64,000 nt of DNA from Takakia lepidozioides. Taxonomy: Eukaryota > Plantae > Bryophyta. The translations under genes were made by a program, and so were the position numbers. The stretch lies in contig CM060732.1 in NCBI GenBank assembly GCA_030704615.1, forward strand, positions 64,294,001 through 64,358,000. The letters run 5' to 3'. Positions within the stretch are counted from its first letter, which is position 1, and each line of letters starts with the position of its first letter. The notes beneath the pieces were generated by a model. It was given only the letters and a program-made list of their open reading frames with translations. It was not told the DNA's origin and searched no databases. This document shows, in pieces, positions 18,049 through 29,700 of the stretch.

Positions 18049-19983
<1,935 letters not shown>

Positions 19984-21140: not shown

Positions 21141-21752
21141 TGGACTGGTTTGGATGTTTGTTTGTCATGGGCTCCTCTTCCCCATGTTTCCCTGTAGGAC
21201 ATCTTGTTCTTGCCAAACTGCCACATGAATAACCTCTGATTCTGGTGTGCATCTTTTTCCAAGTCAGACGTAAAATTCAAGATCATACTGTATACTTCTT
21301 TAACTTCCAATAAATAACAAACATAGGCAGAACTCTGCAATGTTAAAGGAAATTGCAAGCACATTTACTCTGCCACCAATGAAGCACTTGTTTAGAACTA
21401 CCAGGTAGAAGGTTATATGCAAAAGACTCATCTGTGAGGATGTTGGAAAGATGCTTTAACATTTCCTGATAATGTCATGGGATAAGGTAGTCTGCTAATG
21501 GAAGACCCTTCCTTTACTTCAGGTAACATAATTCTCCTCTCAGATTCAAGTTCTGTGAAACAATCTCACTTCAACTTCAACCTACATACATAATATAAAC
21601 CTCAACATCTATATTCCGTTGGTCGCATCTCCCTCTCTACCAAACCTCATACCAGAAAAACAGCACAAATAACAAAGACCAGCAGCACCAGAAAGGCTTT
21701 ATTCCAGCACGAATCACCTGCCAACATATAATCAAAGCTCTACATCAGTTAA

Positions 21753-21882
21753 GGCTAGGGAGAGAGGGCATGGTAGAGGTGCACTGGCAATTGAGCTTGA
21801 GGAGCTGCAAATGCTGCCATGGTTGGCACATACCAGCAGCCCAAACTTGCACTTATAAGTGCAAGCTCTGCATCACCTAGCC
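21753..21882 (-). other. Structured RNA element B downstream of the RPL3 stop codon
   Basis: Closing stem GGCUAGG/CCUAGCC; GCAG/CUGC enclosing hairpin CUUGCACU-UAUA-AGUGCAAG; UGGUA/UACCA; GUGC/GCAC. Confidence 0.65.
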
Positions 21883-21933
21883 CCGGCCATGACATTTAAC
21901 CTGCCCAAATCCTAAAACAACGGACTTCAACAA

Positions 21934-22058
21934 GGGAGGGAAGGCATGGCAGAGGTGCACTGGCACTGAAGCGATACAAAAAGCTTCAAATGCTCTGGAG
22001 GGGGCACTTGCCAGCAGCCAAGATGAGGGCTTCAGCCCTAGCCCTGCATCACCCACCC
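21934..22058 (-). other. Structured RNA element A downstream of the RPL3 stop codon (paralogue of B)
   Basis: Closing stem GGGUGGG/CCCUCCC; GCAG/CUGC enclosing AGGGCU-GA-AGCCCU; UGGCA/UGCCA; GUGC/GCAC; GAAGC/GCUUC. Confidence 0.65.
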
Positions 22059-22117
22059 AAGAGTTCGTCACATAAGACCTGACAAAAATCCTGAACATCA
22101 AACCTGATCCGTCATCA

Positions 22118-24259
<2,142 letters not shown>

Positions 24260-25427
24260 ATGGAAGGGGAGGAAGCGGGTGCGAGAGCGCTCCCACCCTT
24301 CCTGCTTCTGCTGGGGACGCATGTGGAGCTCTCGACTCCATCACCCGAGGACGATGAAGGCATGCGTGCAATACTCTCCGACCCGATTACCATTCGACAT
24401 TTGCCTCAATTCGACCGTGGCAGGCATGGCTGGACGCTCGACGAGGTGGCCCGTCGCAGAGAGGATCAGGTAAAGCTAAACGAAACCGAGTCAAACTGTG
24501 TAATCTATGGGTTGCATTAAATCGCTGTCACCATCGTATGCACAGCGTGGGGTGCAGGTATTTCTCTTTTTCCGGATGGCTTAACTAACTGTAAGAGATA
24601 CTCTTAGGTTGAAATTAAGTCCAATGCCCAAGATGCGATGAGGTAAAGCTGTTGAAGTACCTGTCACTCTTTTCACTGGAAATGCTGAAATTTTGAGCAC
24701 GTTTGCCATCCCCTTTGCATAGACACAGGATGGCAGACTGCAAACTATTTCTATGTATGGTAGTCCTTTTGCTGGAAGAAATTGTGAAGCTGTTGATAAG
24801 CTGCTGACCATCCAGCTGTACTTGTCCTCAGTAGAGAAAGGGGATAGCAGAGTTATAATAGGTTCATTCTTTTCACAACATGGTCAAAGCCAAGGTTGAT
24901 TGTGAACAAGGAACAGAGATATTTTGAAGCTATTTTTTCTACCCCTCATCTGTTGAGTCTCATAGCTTGGAATGATTTGGTGCACCTTTGACATATTTTC
25001 CAGACTAAAAAATGTGCAGGTTCACTCCCAATTGGAGCACGGGGCACTTGTCTTGAACATACACTGCCAAAATCCTGGAGGGACAGGGACCGTTCTAGCT
25101 GGATCCACGGGGTTTCGATCAGTAGATTTCCAACAGAGCATTGCAGAGTGTGGGATCGTTCTCCATCATACCTTTTGGGGAAAGGGACTGGCAACAGAAG
25201 CTCAGTACCTGTGCCTCAAATATGGCTTTGAGACACTGTTTTTAAATCAAGTAGAGTGGATCACTGATGAGAAAAATGAGAGCATGCGAGGTTGGCTTGA
25301 AAATGTTCTGGGCCTACAAGGATCACATCTGGAGAATGAGCATAATCTGGTAAAGTACACCTTGCCCCGTTTGGAATGGTGGAGCACAGGGAGAGCTGTT
25401 CTAGAAAAAAGGTTGGCCTGCCAATAA
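24260..25427 (+). CDS. GNAT N-acetyltransferase, RimJ/RimL (Acetyltransf_3) type; exons 24260-24469 and 25020-25427 (205 aa)
   Basis: AECGIVLHHTFWGKGLATEA (acetyl-CoA motif A) and KYGFETLFLNQVEWITDEKNESM. The phase-0 GT-AG intron joins the two frames. Confidence 0.85.
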
Positions 25428-26239: not shown

Positions 26240-26775
26240 TTGTGATACCAACGCAGGCAATTGTAGAATCTGATCATTCCAAGGTATTTTTGGATTGGAT
26301 CGACATCATGCAAATAGGTCCTGAACTGTCTTCAATCCTCCATACTGTCTAAATTTTCCGTCAATATCTGCACATATCTGTAACGTTTGGACTCCCCCAT
26401 ACTCTCCCTGTCTCATATTTGTATCGACTAAAGAAGTCGACTTCGCCAGCCTCCTGATGCAGATGCTTGTATTCCTTCAAGGTGTAGACGTTACACTTGC
26501 GTACGATAGCATCCGCACTGTTCAAATCAACATGGTCCGACAACAGCAGCTCATTCCGACCTTGATGAGCCTCTCGTCCTAGATAACAATCTTCTGGTCG
26601 ATAATACCACTGACCGGCCACAGTTAGTTCTCCAGTTCGGGAGTTCTGGAATATCTCATCTATTTGAGCCACCCACAACGGCTCATCCTCACCTTCGGGA
26701 GACATCAAGACGTTATCTCCAATTTTGATGAGTTCAACCAGGAAGAAGTCGTCAATTGATACCACAAGTGCCATC
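26240..26775 (-). pseudogene. BAH-domain gene (EBS/SHL-like) with a decayed PHD finger
   Basis: IGDNVLM...PLWVAQI...WYYRPED...ELLLSDHVD...IVRKCNV...FFSRYKY. Downstream, out of frame, MIRFYNCLRWYH resembles the PHD MxQCxxCxxWxH. The start is uncertain. Confidence 0.7.
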
Positions 26776-29700
26776 CTTATTTTTCCAGAAACTAATAGAC
26801 AAGCAAGCAAACACACGTAAGAAAAGACTCGGATCAGGTTCAGATTAAGTCTGCCAGCTTCTGCAATGATGTAAGTTCTTCAGAAATCATAGATCACGAG
26901 AACAATAAGTTTATATATATAGGAACGATCTCTCCCATTGTCTTTTGGCGTCAAAACTTTTTCTTCTTTTCCTCCCTTTTTTCTCAAACTTTAACGATTT
27001 TCTCATGTTTCCGTTTTTGGAACTTGGAGCATATGCGCCCATCAAGGCCATATCTTTTGGCGATCTAGTGGTAGAAGCAGTAATCAAGAGCCCACTAAAT
27101 TCCTTTCTGTGTCTACCACCATTGACAAGTTAGGTGCTGGTCTCATGGCACTTCACATAGAGACTCACTCTAGAGCTGCATCTTTGAAACTGTCAATTTA
27201 TGATTGCACGGAAGTATCAGGATTCCGGAGGTTTTCAAGGCATGTTGACTGCCAATCTGCCAGCCCGATAGTGCGCAAGGGTGTATTATTTCTTTCAGGA
27301 ACATGCAGTACAAGGCCGCTGAGCCACATTTTTCCATCTGCTGATGAGCTGCTGATTTGACACGGTACAGAATAAGGTCCAACCCACTTAGCCTCACTCA
27401 CACGCACAACAATCCTTCTCCTAGCTGGGCATTTTGTTTTCCTCGGATAAGACACGATGGAACACACAGGGAACACACTACGAGATCACTCACTCGTGTC
27501 CCTAGTGAGTGATCACCTTTAGAGTGAAACAACAAAGCGAGATTTCTTAATCCCAATGCAACAACTTGGCAGTGTTGAGCTTCTCTTCCATGGAAGTGAC
27601 AATCTCGAAATTGATTGCTACTGTCCTTCCTTTCTCTGCATCACTGCCAACATTATCTTCAGATGCCGAGCTCCCTAGCTTCTGGCTTCTGTGCGCTCAC
27701 AATGATAGACTGGAAGCTTGATGGTAGGAAGGTAGGAACGGTATCTCTCTCGGAACTGAAGGCCAGTCTAGAAGAAGCTCGAACTGAAATCCTTCAACAC
27801 AAAGCAACTCCCTCGTCCATGGGCACGTTTGAAGACCTGTCGCCATGCTCGTCGGTGCTCATTCAGGTCACATTACTTCCCTGGGGGTAATACCAAAGAG
27901 TTGTCCCCGAACTCTGCACAACCAGCAGTACGCTACCATACCGTACCTCCAATAAGGTAATTCTAGTATTTAATAGTACTCGGTTTCCGACAAGATGCAT
28001 AGACTTTTTTAGGGTTGACGGGTTTCTGGGAACCAGCAGCGGAATTTACTGGTTTTCGCCCGAGGAAGGTTCTATGGATGAATGTTTCCAAGTATCGATG
28101 AAAGTATGGTGCGTAGATGAAGCACGTGCTGCACAACGACAGCGCGCCAAGAACCGTTGGATCTCTGAAGACGGCTGGGCTATTTATACAGATCATTAAT
28201 GAAGGTAAGTTGAGCTTTACTTAATCGGGACTTAAGGCCAAGTTAATCTTCAAACTAAGACCAGGAAATTGTGAACAGGTGAGTCAGCAGGGTGTCGTTA
28301 TTTTTGAAAAAAGTGCAGTTAGGCTCGGGGGAGCCTCGGACCATTGGATCAGGTTCGTTACAGTATCTGGTTTGGTTAGGGAAATGGACCCGGGTTCGGG
28401 ATGGGTTCGGGATTGGCTCCGATTCTGGTATGGTTGTGTGTCTCTCTCGTAGAAAGCAGACGCAGAGCTTTGGCGTGCAGTGGCGCTCTCGGACATGCGG
28501 ACGCTGCCTGCGGGGGCGGAGTCTGAGCACGGTCGTGTAGCTGGTGCTGCAAAGGATTGAGAGGATTGCTTGTTGTAGGGATAAAATTGGAGGTGCAGGT
28601 GAGTTTGGAAGTCAATGCCCTGTTTACGGTGCAATTGTGGCCGGGAGGAAATCGAGGCAATCCGAACGGCGGTCGACCTTCCTCTTCTGATGGCCGAGTA
28701 GCCTCAGACTGTGAGGGGAATGGTGGAATCGAGGCCTCGCGGCAGGGGCGAAGTCTGCTTGTTGCAATGAGGTGAGGGCAGTCGTGGTCAGGGATGTTCA
28801 CACCCTTTGATGACCAGTCTTTGTCCCTGGATCTCTTTTTGTTGATCTTTTTGTGTGTACATCTATACATCTATACATGGAAGTAAGCTGACCCTGCGCA
28901 CCTCGGACTCATCGTCCTCTCTGCTTCCCTCTCTTCCTCCTGTCTGTTAATTGTAATACTGTCAATCAAGTGCTGCCTGCTGGGAATCTGGTTTTCACCT
29001 TTCCGGAGGTTCGTAAGCTCTTTCCTTCCGTTTCACTAAGAGTGTCTATGGAAGCTGTCAATCGAGTTCCGCTTAGTGAGAAGGGCTCTGACAGGGAACT
29101 TCCTGCATATGAAACTGTCCTTTCTCTTCTTCTCTCTTTCTGTCGGCGAGGACGAGTTCAGTGATTCTTATTCTCCGTGTCCTAACGGCCGGGGTGTGTG
29201 GCCAGTCGAGGAGTTCGGATATGCTGGCCTATTTTCCCGGGTAGAAACGTCGGTACGTTTGATTTATGTCTTCAGATCCATGAAATTTATCGGAACAGAG
29301 GAACTTAGTCTTGTCGGCCTTGTGTTTGAACATCGATCTTCACTCAATTGCGAAGCTATGTTCTTCCCCGCGTCAACTACTTCACAGATTGCACTTTGCA
29401 CTTTATCCCACCGTCGCTTGCGTGTCTTCGAATTCATGACAGTTATCACATCGGAACCTGGGTTTGTGACCCCCATCCCACTCAGTTATGAGGTGTTCCT
29501 TACCACTTTTAATAGTTTTTTAAAGTCACAGGTTGCCTTAGCATGTACCTGAAGTTGTTATAAGCATTATTCATATTTTTGAAATGGCTATAAATGTGAC
29601 TGTGCAGCAGATTCCTTTGTCTGGTTCCATCTGTCATGTCTTTGACTTGGAGAAGATCTTTATAACTAGAGACCCGGGGCTTCCAGTTTAGCCTCCCAGT

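Follow-up and report, generated by a model that had tools for sequence, protein, structure and literature searches.

The RPL3 locus and its tandem elements

The window analysed here, a 64-kb stretch of the genome of the moss Takakia lepidozioides, carries on its minus strand the last exon of RPL3, the gene for cytosolic ribosomal protein uL3, and the protein encoded by this exon is 82–91% identical to plant RPL3 fragments. The stop codon is followed by two tandem RNA elements (hereafter, element B, the upstream copy, and element A, the downstream copy), with element B starting 60 nt and element A 236 nt from the stop codon. The minus strand, which carries both elements, is the RPL3 sense strand. 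The features of this region are as follows:

22118–22747, minus strand: last exon of RPL3 (cytosolic uL3), from Pfam PF00297 Ribosomal_L3, E = 4e-95
22118–22120, minus strand: RPL3 stop codon TGA, read from the sequence
22112–22117, minus strand: extra in-frame TGA codons after the stop, read from the sequence
21934–22058, minus strand: element B, upstream copy, a three-way junction of 125 nt, from its fold and covariance model R1 (116 bits, E = 2e-31)
21883–21933, minus strand: spacer of 51 nt between copies A and B, read from the sequence
21753–21882, minus strand: element A, downstream copy, a three-way junction of 130 nt, from its fold and covariance model R1 (117 bits, E = 9e-32)
21698–21703, minus strand: AAUAAA hexamer, 50 nt past element A, read from the sequence

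The hexamer is likely to be the poly(A) signal, and its position would place both copies within an RPL3 3′ untranslated region (3′UTR) of about 420–460 nt. Two small runs hold 76–93% of the sampled words of the stretch, the RNA label of these runs being a guess.

Other features of the locus concern the coding gene and its neighbours. RPL3 ends in three in-frame TGA codons in a row (22112–22120, minus strand), where the relatives examined have a single stop. On the plus strand, the next gene ends near 19983, and a GNAT acetyltransferase gene at 24236–25427 (Acetyltransf_3, E = 2e-13) stands head-to-head with RPL3, about 300 nt from the RPL3 start; given this layout, the two genes may share a promoter region. 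An exon-sized open reading frame at 26361–26816 on the minus strand encodes a BAH domain (E = 2e-19).

Fold of the two copies

Copies A and B, folded singly, adopt an identical three-way junction, in which a closing stem (P1) joins a variable hairpin (P2) and a stem with an almost invariant base (P3), and in which the arms are very unequal in length (about 20 nt versus about 80 nt). This agrees with the sequence-only reading, which had placed tandem three-way-junction RNAs 3′ of the RPL3 stop and had quoted four strings common to them; both RNAs are present on the minus strand, and all four strings are found in copy A and in copy B. The helices that it quoted also pair as claimed, but the closing stem of B contains a central U·U mismatch. 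The parts of the two folds map as follows:

22052–22058, minus strand: element B, 5′ strand of closing stem P1, partner 21934–21940, with one U·U mismatch (fold)
22026–22045, minus strand: element B, variable hairpin P2 (fold and covariation)
22003–22019, minus strand: element B, invariant P3 base, 5′ side, in the order stem, loop of 3 nt, stem of 5 bp, loop of 1 nt, stem (alignment)
21943–21960, minus strand: element B, invariant P3 base, 3′ side, in the order stem, C-N-C loop, stem of 5 bp, loop of 1 nt, stem (alignment)
21876–21882, minus strand: element A, 5′ strand of closing stem P1, partner 21753–21759 (fold; P1 covaries across species)
21846–21865, minus strand: element A, variable hairpin P2 (fold and covariation)
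21825–21841, minus strand: element A, 5′ strand of the invariant P3 base (alignment)
21767–21784, minus strand: element A, 3′ strand of the invariant P3 base (alignment)

The P3 base has the consensus GGGC/GCCC, a 3×1 loop, UGGYA/URCYA, a 1×3 loop and GUGC/GCAC. Its two internal loops are mirror images of each other, with 3 nt facing 1 nt, then 5 bp, then 1 nt facing 3 nt. What variation there is keeps the pairing: C–G, U–A and U·G interchange at one pair, and G–C and G·U at another. As a separate observation, the pentamer UGCYA occurs twice in the 3′ strand of each element (within 21943–21965 in B and 21767–21789 in A, minus strand), and the two pentamers change together between species.

Folding energies, taken by themselves, are a poor guide to this structure. 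Compared with shuffled sequences, copy A folds with a z-score of −3.2 and copy B with one of −0.9; the whole 3′UTR reaches a z-score of about 0, no better than shuffles, and in its minimum-free-energy fold copies A and B cross-pair. By energy, neither copy B nor the complete 3′UTR gives more than a weak signal, and the decisive support for the fold is comparative.

A first such comparison is that between the two copies themselves. A 23-nt string common to both occurs exactly twice in the 64 kb, against 0 occurrences expected from shuffles, and the copies are 72% identical overall, with compensatory changes and with the fold kept in both. Because they are also each other's closest relatives, this points to a duplication in this moss lineage, after which both copies would have been kept in shape.

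Conservation behind RPL3 in mosses and liverworts

Relatives of the locus were found by a protein search with the RPL3 last exon only, and their contigs were then retrieved. Local BLAST of the window's 3′UTR against the other moss-type loci gives an alignment that is confined to the element, and the 51-nt spacer between A and B has no counterpart in other species. The element lies on the sense strand, 30–125 nt 3′ of the RPL3 stop, in at least four other moss-type loci and in the land-plant and liverwort loci described below. A scan of JGI metagenome contigs with a two-part motif returned nine matches, seven of which lie directly 3′ of RPL3 (in one of these seven, the gene is cut by the contig end); the remaining two are chance matches on GC-rich contigs.

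The sequence-only reading had named conservation at other RPL3 genes as a test, and a covariance model (R1, built from seven copies) finds the element behind RPL3 in other species. Six moss-type copies, including the two in the window, score 98–137 bits, and a shortened copy (L036) scores 72 bits. Beyond these, the model recovers the element in a liverwort cDNA (L011) at E = 4e-11 to 1e-15 and as two tandem copies in a further land-plant locus (L010) at E = 6e-13 and 1e-4. The cryptochrome of the L010 plant has no more than 68% identity to that of any named plant, and on the contig of L001 and L016 the one long open reading frame is a retrotransposon tail. The RPL3 locus of Marchantia polymorpha (L052) gives a marginal match (E = 0.07) at the expected site, 30 nt past the stop, and probably carries the element as well.

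The shortened copy differs from the others by a clean deletion of the distal 47 nt of P3 (L036, 2809–2895), with P1, P2 and the two loops intact. It belongs to the third RPL3 locus of the metagenome sample that also holds L001 and L014, and its coding exon is more diverged (82% versus 89%); the locus may be a paralogue in decay, or the copy a minimal form of the element that occurs naturally. Some RPL3 genes have no element at all: an angiosperm-type locus (L023) and two others (L028 and L030) gave no element 3′ of RPL3, and in the sample in which one RPL3 paralogue (L010) has two tandem elements, a second paralogue (L013) has none within 310 nt past its stop. Judging from these absences, the element is dispensable for some RPL3 genes.

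RNAalifold, applied to a MAFFT alignment, returns the same three-way junction. A model-fitted alignment leans towards structure, and the MAFFT-only alignment was therefore used beside it: in the MAFFT-only alignment, 96.5% of cells are paired, compared with 31–52% for slid controls, and six pairs are changed on both sides; in the model-fitted alignment of 10 sequences, which cover few independent lineages (roughly six), 95.3% of cells are paired and 10 pairs are changed on both sides, a level that none of 500 shuffles reaches. Covariation lies mostly in P1 and P2, and all four modelled P2 pairs have changed on both sides. Among the individual changes, a stem that reads GGC/GCC in other species reads GUC/GAC in Marchantia. 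The alignment also contains 27 G·U cells, owing to which the RPL3 sense strand fits the fold better than the antisense strand (95.3% versus 87.7% paired). The argument of the sequence-only reading, that compensatory change between the copies reflects selection on structure, thus holds across species, with two-sided changes in P1 and P2 and no shuffle out of 500 as good. The element exists, is under selection for structure and is specific to RPL3.

These data also bear on the idea that A and B are neutral or repeat-derived sequence, such as a recent tandem duplication or a SINE/LINE-tail fragment. Two copies in tandem would be expected of such an origin. However, the element occupies the same site behind RPL3 in mosses and liverworts, and the copies are diverged by 28% with compensatory changes. 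Only A and B occur in the 64-kb window, and the first model search of about 93 kb of other-species loci and the metagenome scan yielded no copies at other sites. With both copies in the 64 kb behind RPL3 and all seven true metagenome matches RPL3-linked, a dispersed repeat or SINE was rejected, and we give a neutral or repeat origin almost no credence.

The P3 base and the ribosomal C-loop

All moss-type copies and the liverwort cDNA have a consensus fold with two 3×1 loops in the P3 base; in Marchantia, loop 1 is 2×1. In loop 2, all copies have C-N-C on the long strand (CUC, CAC or CGC). In loop 1, most copies have CAC or CGC, both window copies have UGC and the first of the two L010 copies (L010a) has UCU.

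This arrangement shares, at the level of a motif, the layout of the C-loop of ribosomal RNA. C-loops are protein-binding sites, with instances in helices 38, 50 and 96 of 23S rRNA (PMC2952876). In helix 96 of Escherichia coli 23S rRNA, the long strand reads CAC then UGG, and the short strand GCUA plus one base. The moss-type copy L001 equals helix 96 at the loop, with the same U–A, G·U and G–C pairs, but the likeness extends over only about 10 nt, is one of motif and not of a copy, and ends at the closing stem, which differs. In loop 1 of both window copies, the first C of the C-loop is replaced by U. A BLAST comparison of the element with E. coli 23S rRNA found common words of 7–9 nt only, at E values of about 1 or more. 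In the ribosome, uL3 sits at helix 95 and domain VI; helix 96 is linked to eL24 and Ssf1 rather than to uL3 (PMC9508819, PMC5416885).

Presence in the mature RPL3 mRNA of liverworts

Two liverwort transcripts place the element in mRNA. One (L012) matches the M. polymorpha locus at 100% identity once three introns are removed and extends 191 nt past the stop, through the element; the other is the cDNA of a related liverwort (L011), a spliced transcript with a well-scoring copy. Because these spliced transcripts run through it, the element belongs to the mature RPL3 3′UTR in liverworts; the refuting outcome named by the sequence-only reading, transcripts that stop short of the elements, is not seen there. 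For the window's own moss, we infer that both copies are part of the 3′UTR.

In the same two liverworts, a second block of about 35 nt follows 15–25 nt past the element (L052:4294–4330 and L011:1384–1418). This block, which the moss loci do not have, hardly differs between M. polymorpha and L011 and is conserved more tightly than the coding sequence.

A location in the 3′UTR invites an explanation by passive architecture, in which about 125 nt per copy, looped out near the stop, would shorten the effective 3′UTR or shape 3′-end processing. Such looping could, for example, keep a long 3′UTR from nonsense-mediated decay with no specific partner. Long 3′UTRs trigger decay in plants, and the 3′UTR of about 420–460 nt proposed here would be long for a ribosomal-protein mRNA; the constant position of the element, always 30–125 nt from the stop codon, and a closing stem maintained by covariation fit the same idea. 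However, passive looping leaves unexplained the near-invariant sequence of the P3 base and its C-N-C loops, which are kept in mosses and liverworts alike, and we consider it improbable.

Comparison with known RNA classes

Rfam 15 contains no match to the element at the gathering score, and a threshold relaxed to E = 10 brings up nothing but noise; a literature search found no description of such an RPL3 element. We class the element as a new RNA family of a known kind, the structured element on a ribosomal-protein mRNA. The sequence-only reading had set the elements apart from C/D, H/ACA, hammerhead and TPP-riboswitch RNAs, with which the Rfam result and the absence of these layouts agree, and it had allowed that a known snoRNA or transposable element might yet match them; none turned up.

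The individual classes were rejected on the following grounds. C/D box snoRNAs would have a C box (RUGAUGA) and a D box (CUGA) lining the 5′ and 3′ sides of the terminal stem; here, the word UGAUGC is confined to the window copies, with UGAAAC, UGAAAU or AAUGUG at this site in other species, and no copy has CUGA before the 3′ half of P1. In place of the H/ACA layout of two hairpins, a hinge (ANANNA) and an ACA 3 nt from the end, the fold is a closed three-way junction, again with no Rfam match. Self-cleaving ribozymes such as the hammerhead have a conserved catalytic core at the junction (CUGANGA, GAAA), but the junction strands of the element differ from species to species, are without GAAA and match no Rfam family. 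The TPP riboswitch and other known riboswitches give no covariance-model match in Rfam 15. In a plant microRNA precursor, the conserved strands would form an almost perfect duplex of about 21 nt and would not be broken by two 3×1 loops as they are here, and the sole MIR match is noise at E = 9.5. A 5S rRNA mimic of the P5SM type was set aside on finding no 5S_rRNA match at E up to 10 and arms of about 20 versus 80 nt.

A broader form of the snoRNA idea is that A and B encode small, stable non-coding RNAs of their own (snoRNA-like or of a different class), which would be processed out of the sequence 3′ of RPL3 in the manner of polycistronic snoRNA clusters in plants, with the mRNA as host. Their length of 125–130 nt, terminal closing stem and tandem arrangement in two species would suit such genes, as would the UGAUG word beside the closing stem in copies A and B. 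Against this, UGAUG is not conserved, CUGA is missing before the 3′ half of the stem, the H/ACA layout is absent and no Rfam family matches at the gathering score or at E up to 10. Moreover, the element is still present in spliced liverwort transcripts, and all true motif matches are linked to RPL3. Separate non-coding RNA genes are, in our judgement, an unlikely explanation.

Another reading is that of a sensor, riboswitch-like or conformational, in which a metabolite, an ion or temperature would shift the RNA between two pairings. With its three-way-junction fold, conserved loops and 3′UTR location, the element resembles the TPP riboswitch of plants, and the repeated UGCYA offers an alternative: the 5′ strand can pair with either pentamer, and with the first of them 8 bp can form in six of the seven moss-type copies. 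However, this pairing fails in the liverwort cDNA (L011) and in L010 and does not exist in the shortened copy L036, most of the conserved nucleotides lie in helices, RPL3 points to no obvious ligand and no riboswitch in Rfam matches. We regard a sensor of this kind as very improbable.

Two known plant RNAs nevertheless offer instructive parallels. The TPP riboswitch in the 3′UTRs of plant THIC genes is likewise a conserved, cis-acting junction RNA, but its architecture is different from that of the element, which has no Rfam match. P5SM, a 5S rRNA mimic in plant TFIIIA pre-mRNA and the precedent cited by the sequence-only reading, is comparable in size and likewise has a three-way junction, which a ribosomal protein reads; unlike the element, which matches no rRNA model and lies in the 3′UTR, P5SM copies 5S rRNA and lies in an alternative exon.

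A candidate protein-docking element of the RPL3 3′UTR

We favour the reading, which we consider reasonably probable, that A and B are tandem copies of an undescribed, structurally conserved, cis-acting protein-docking element of the RPL3 3′UTR that is shared by mosses and liverworts. The argument turns on the contrast within the fold. P1 and P2 vary in sequence yet keep their pairing, and the near-invariant base of P3 would serve as the recognition platform; an invariant paired platform between freely covarying stems looks like a sequence-specific protein site. A candidate protein, possibly as a dimer or as two molecules, would dock on the element in cis. The address of the element behind RPL3 suggests control of RPL3 mRNA stability or translation, which the docked protein would then set, and the two copies in this moss may raise the sensitivity or capacity of the response. 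Like autoregulatory elements on ribosomal-protein mRNAs, the element lies, in liverworts, within an mRNA for a ribosomal protein and has a conserved structure that covaries.

The simplest candidate partner of such a docking element would be free uL3, which would close a feedback loop; the sequence-only reading had proposed uL3-binding, possibly rRNA-mimic, autoregulatory elements, a proposal that the selected structure and its tie to RPL3 support in part. Self-control of ribosomal proteins through structured RNAs is textbook knowledge in bacteria, with a handful of cases in fungi and animals, and uL3 is one of the earliest proteins to be assembled into the large subunit. That uL3 itself is the ligand is a tentative proposal drawn from the address of the element. 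In its fullest form, also somewhat speculative, the paired C-loop platform would imitate part of domain VI of 25S rRNA and offer a docking site to free uL3 (or to uL3 and its chaperone together), and uL3 would in this way repress its own mRNA. This would be the first plant example of a ribosomal protein that senses its own mRNA through the 3′UTR, by a circuit that predates the split of mosses and liverworts and is doubled here.

If the docking interpretation is true, a deeply conserved control element of RPL3 mRNA would provide a handle on the balance of ribosome production in early land plants, and the paired C-loop platform would be a compact, well-defined candidate for RNA–protein recognition. 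Marchantia and model mosses allow precise gene targeting, making the idea directly testable.

The nearest functional analogue is found in yeast, where Rps28 binds a hairpin in the RPS28B 3′UTR and thereby leads to Edc3-dependent decapping. Like this hairpin, the element is a structured 3′UTR element on a ribosomal-protein mRNA, and feedback by the encoded protein is the mechanism that we deem most likely for it. The two differ in that the RPS28B element is a small, single fungal hairpin with a known partner and no relation in sequence or fold, whereas the moss element is a 125-nt three-way junction. Structured RNA motifs are also carried by fungal ribosomal-protein genes, including rps0, rps2, rps20, rpl7, rpl30 and others (PMC5640933). 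As with the element described here, these were discovered by comparative genomics, each belongs with a single ribosomal-protein gene, their stems covary and autoregulation is presumed for them; in contrast to it, they lie in 5′UTRs or introns, with none for RPL3 and none in plants (PMC5640933).
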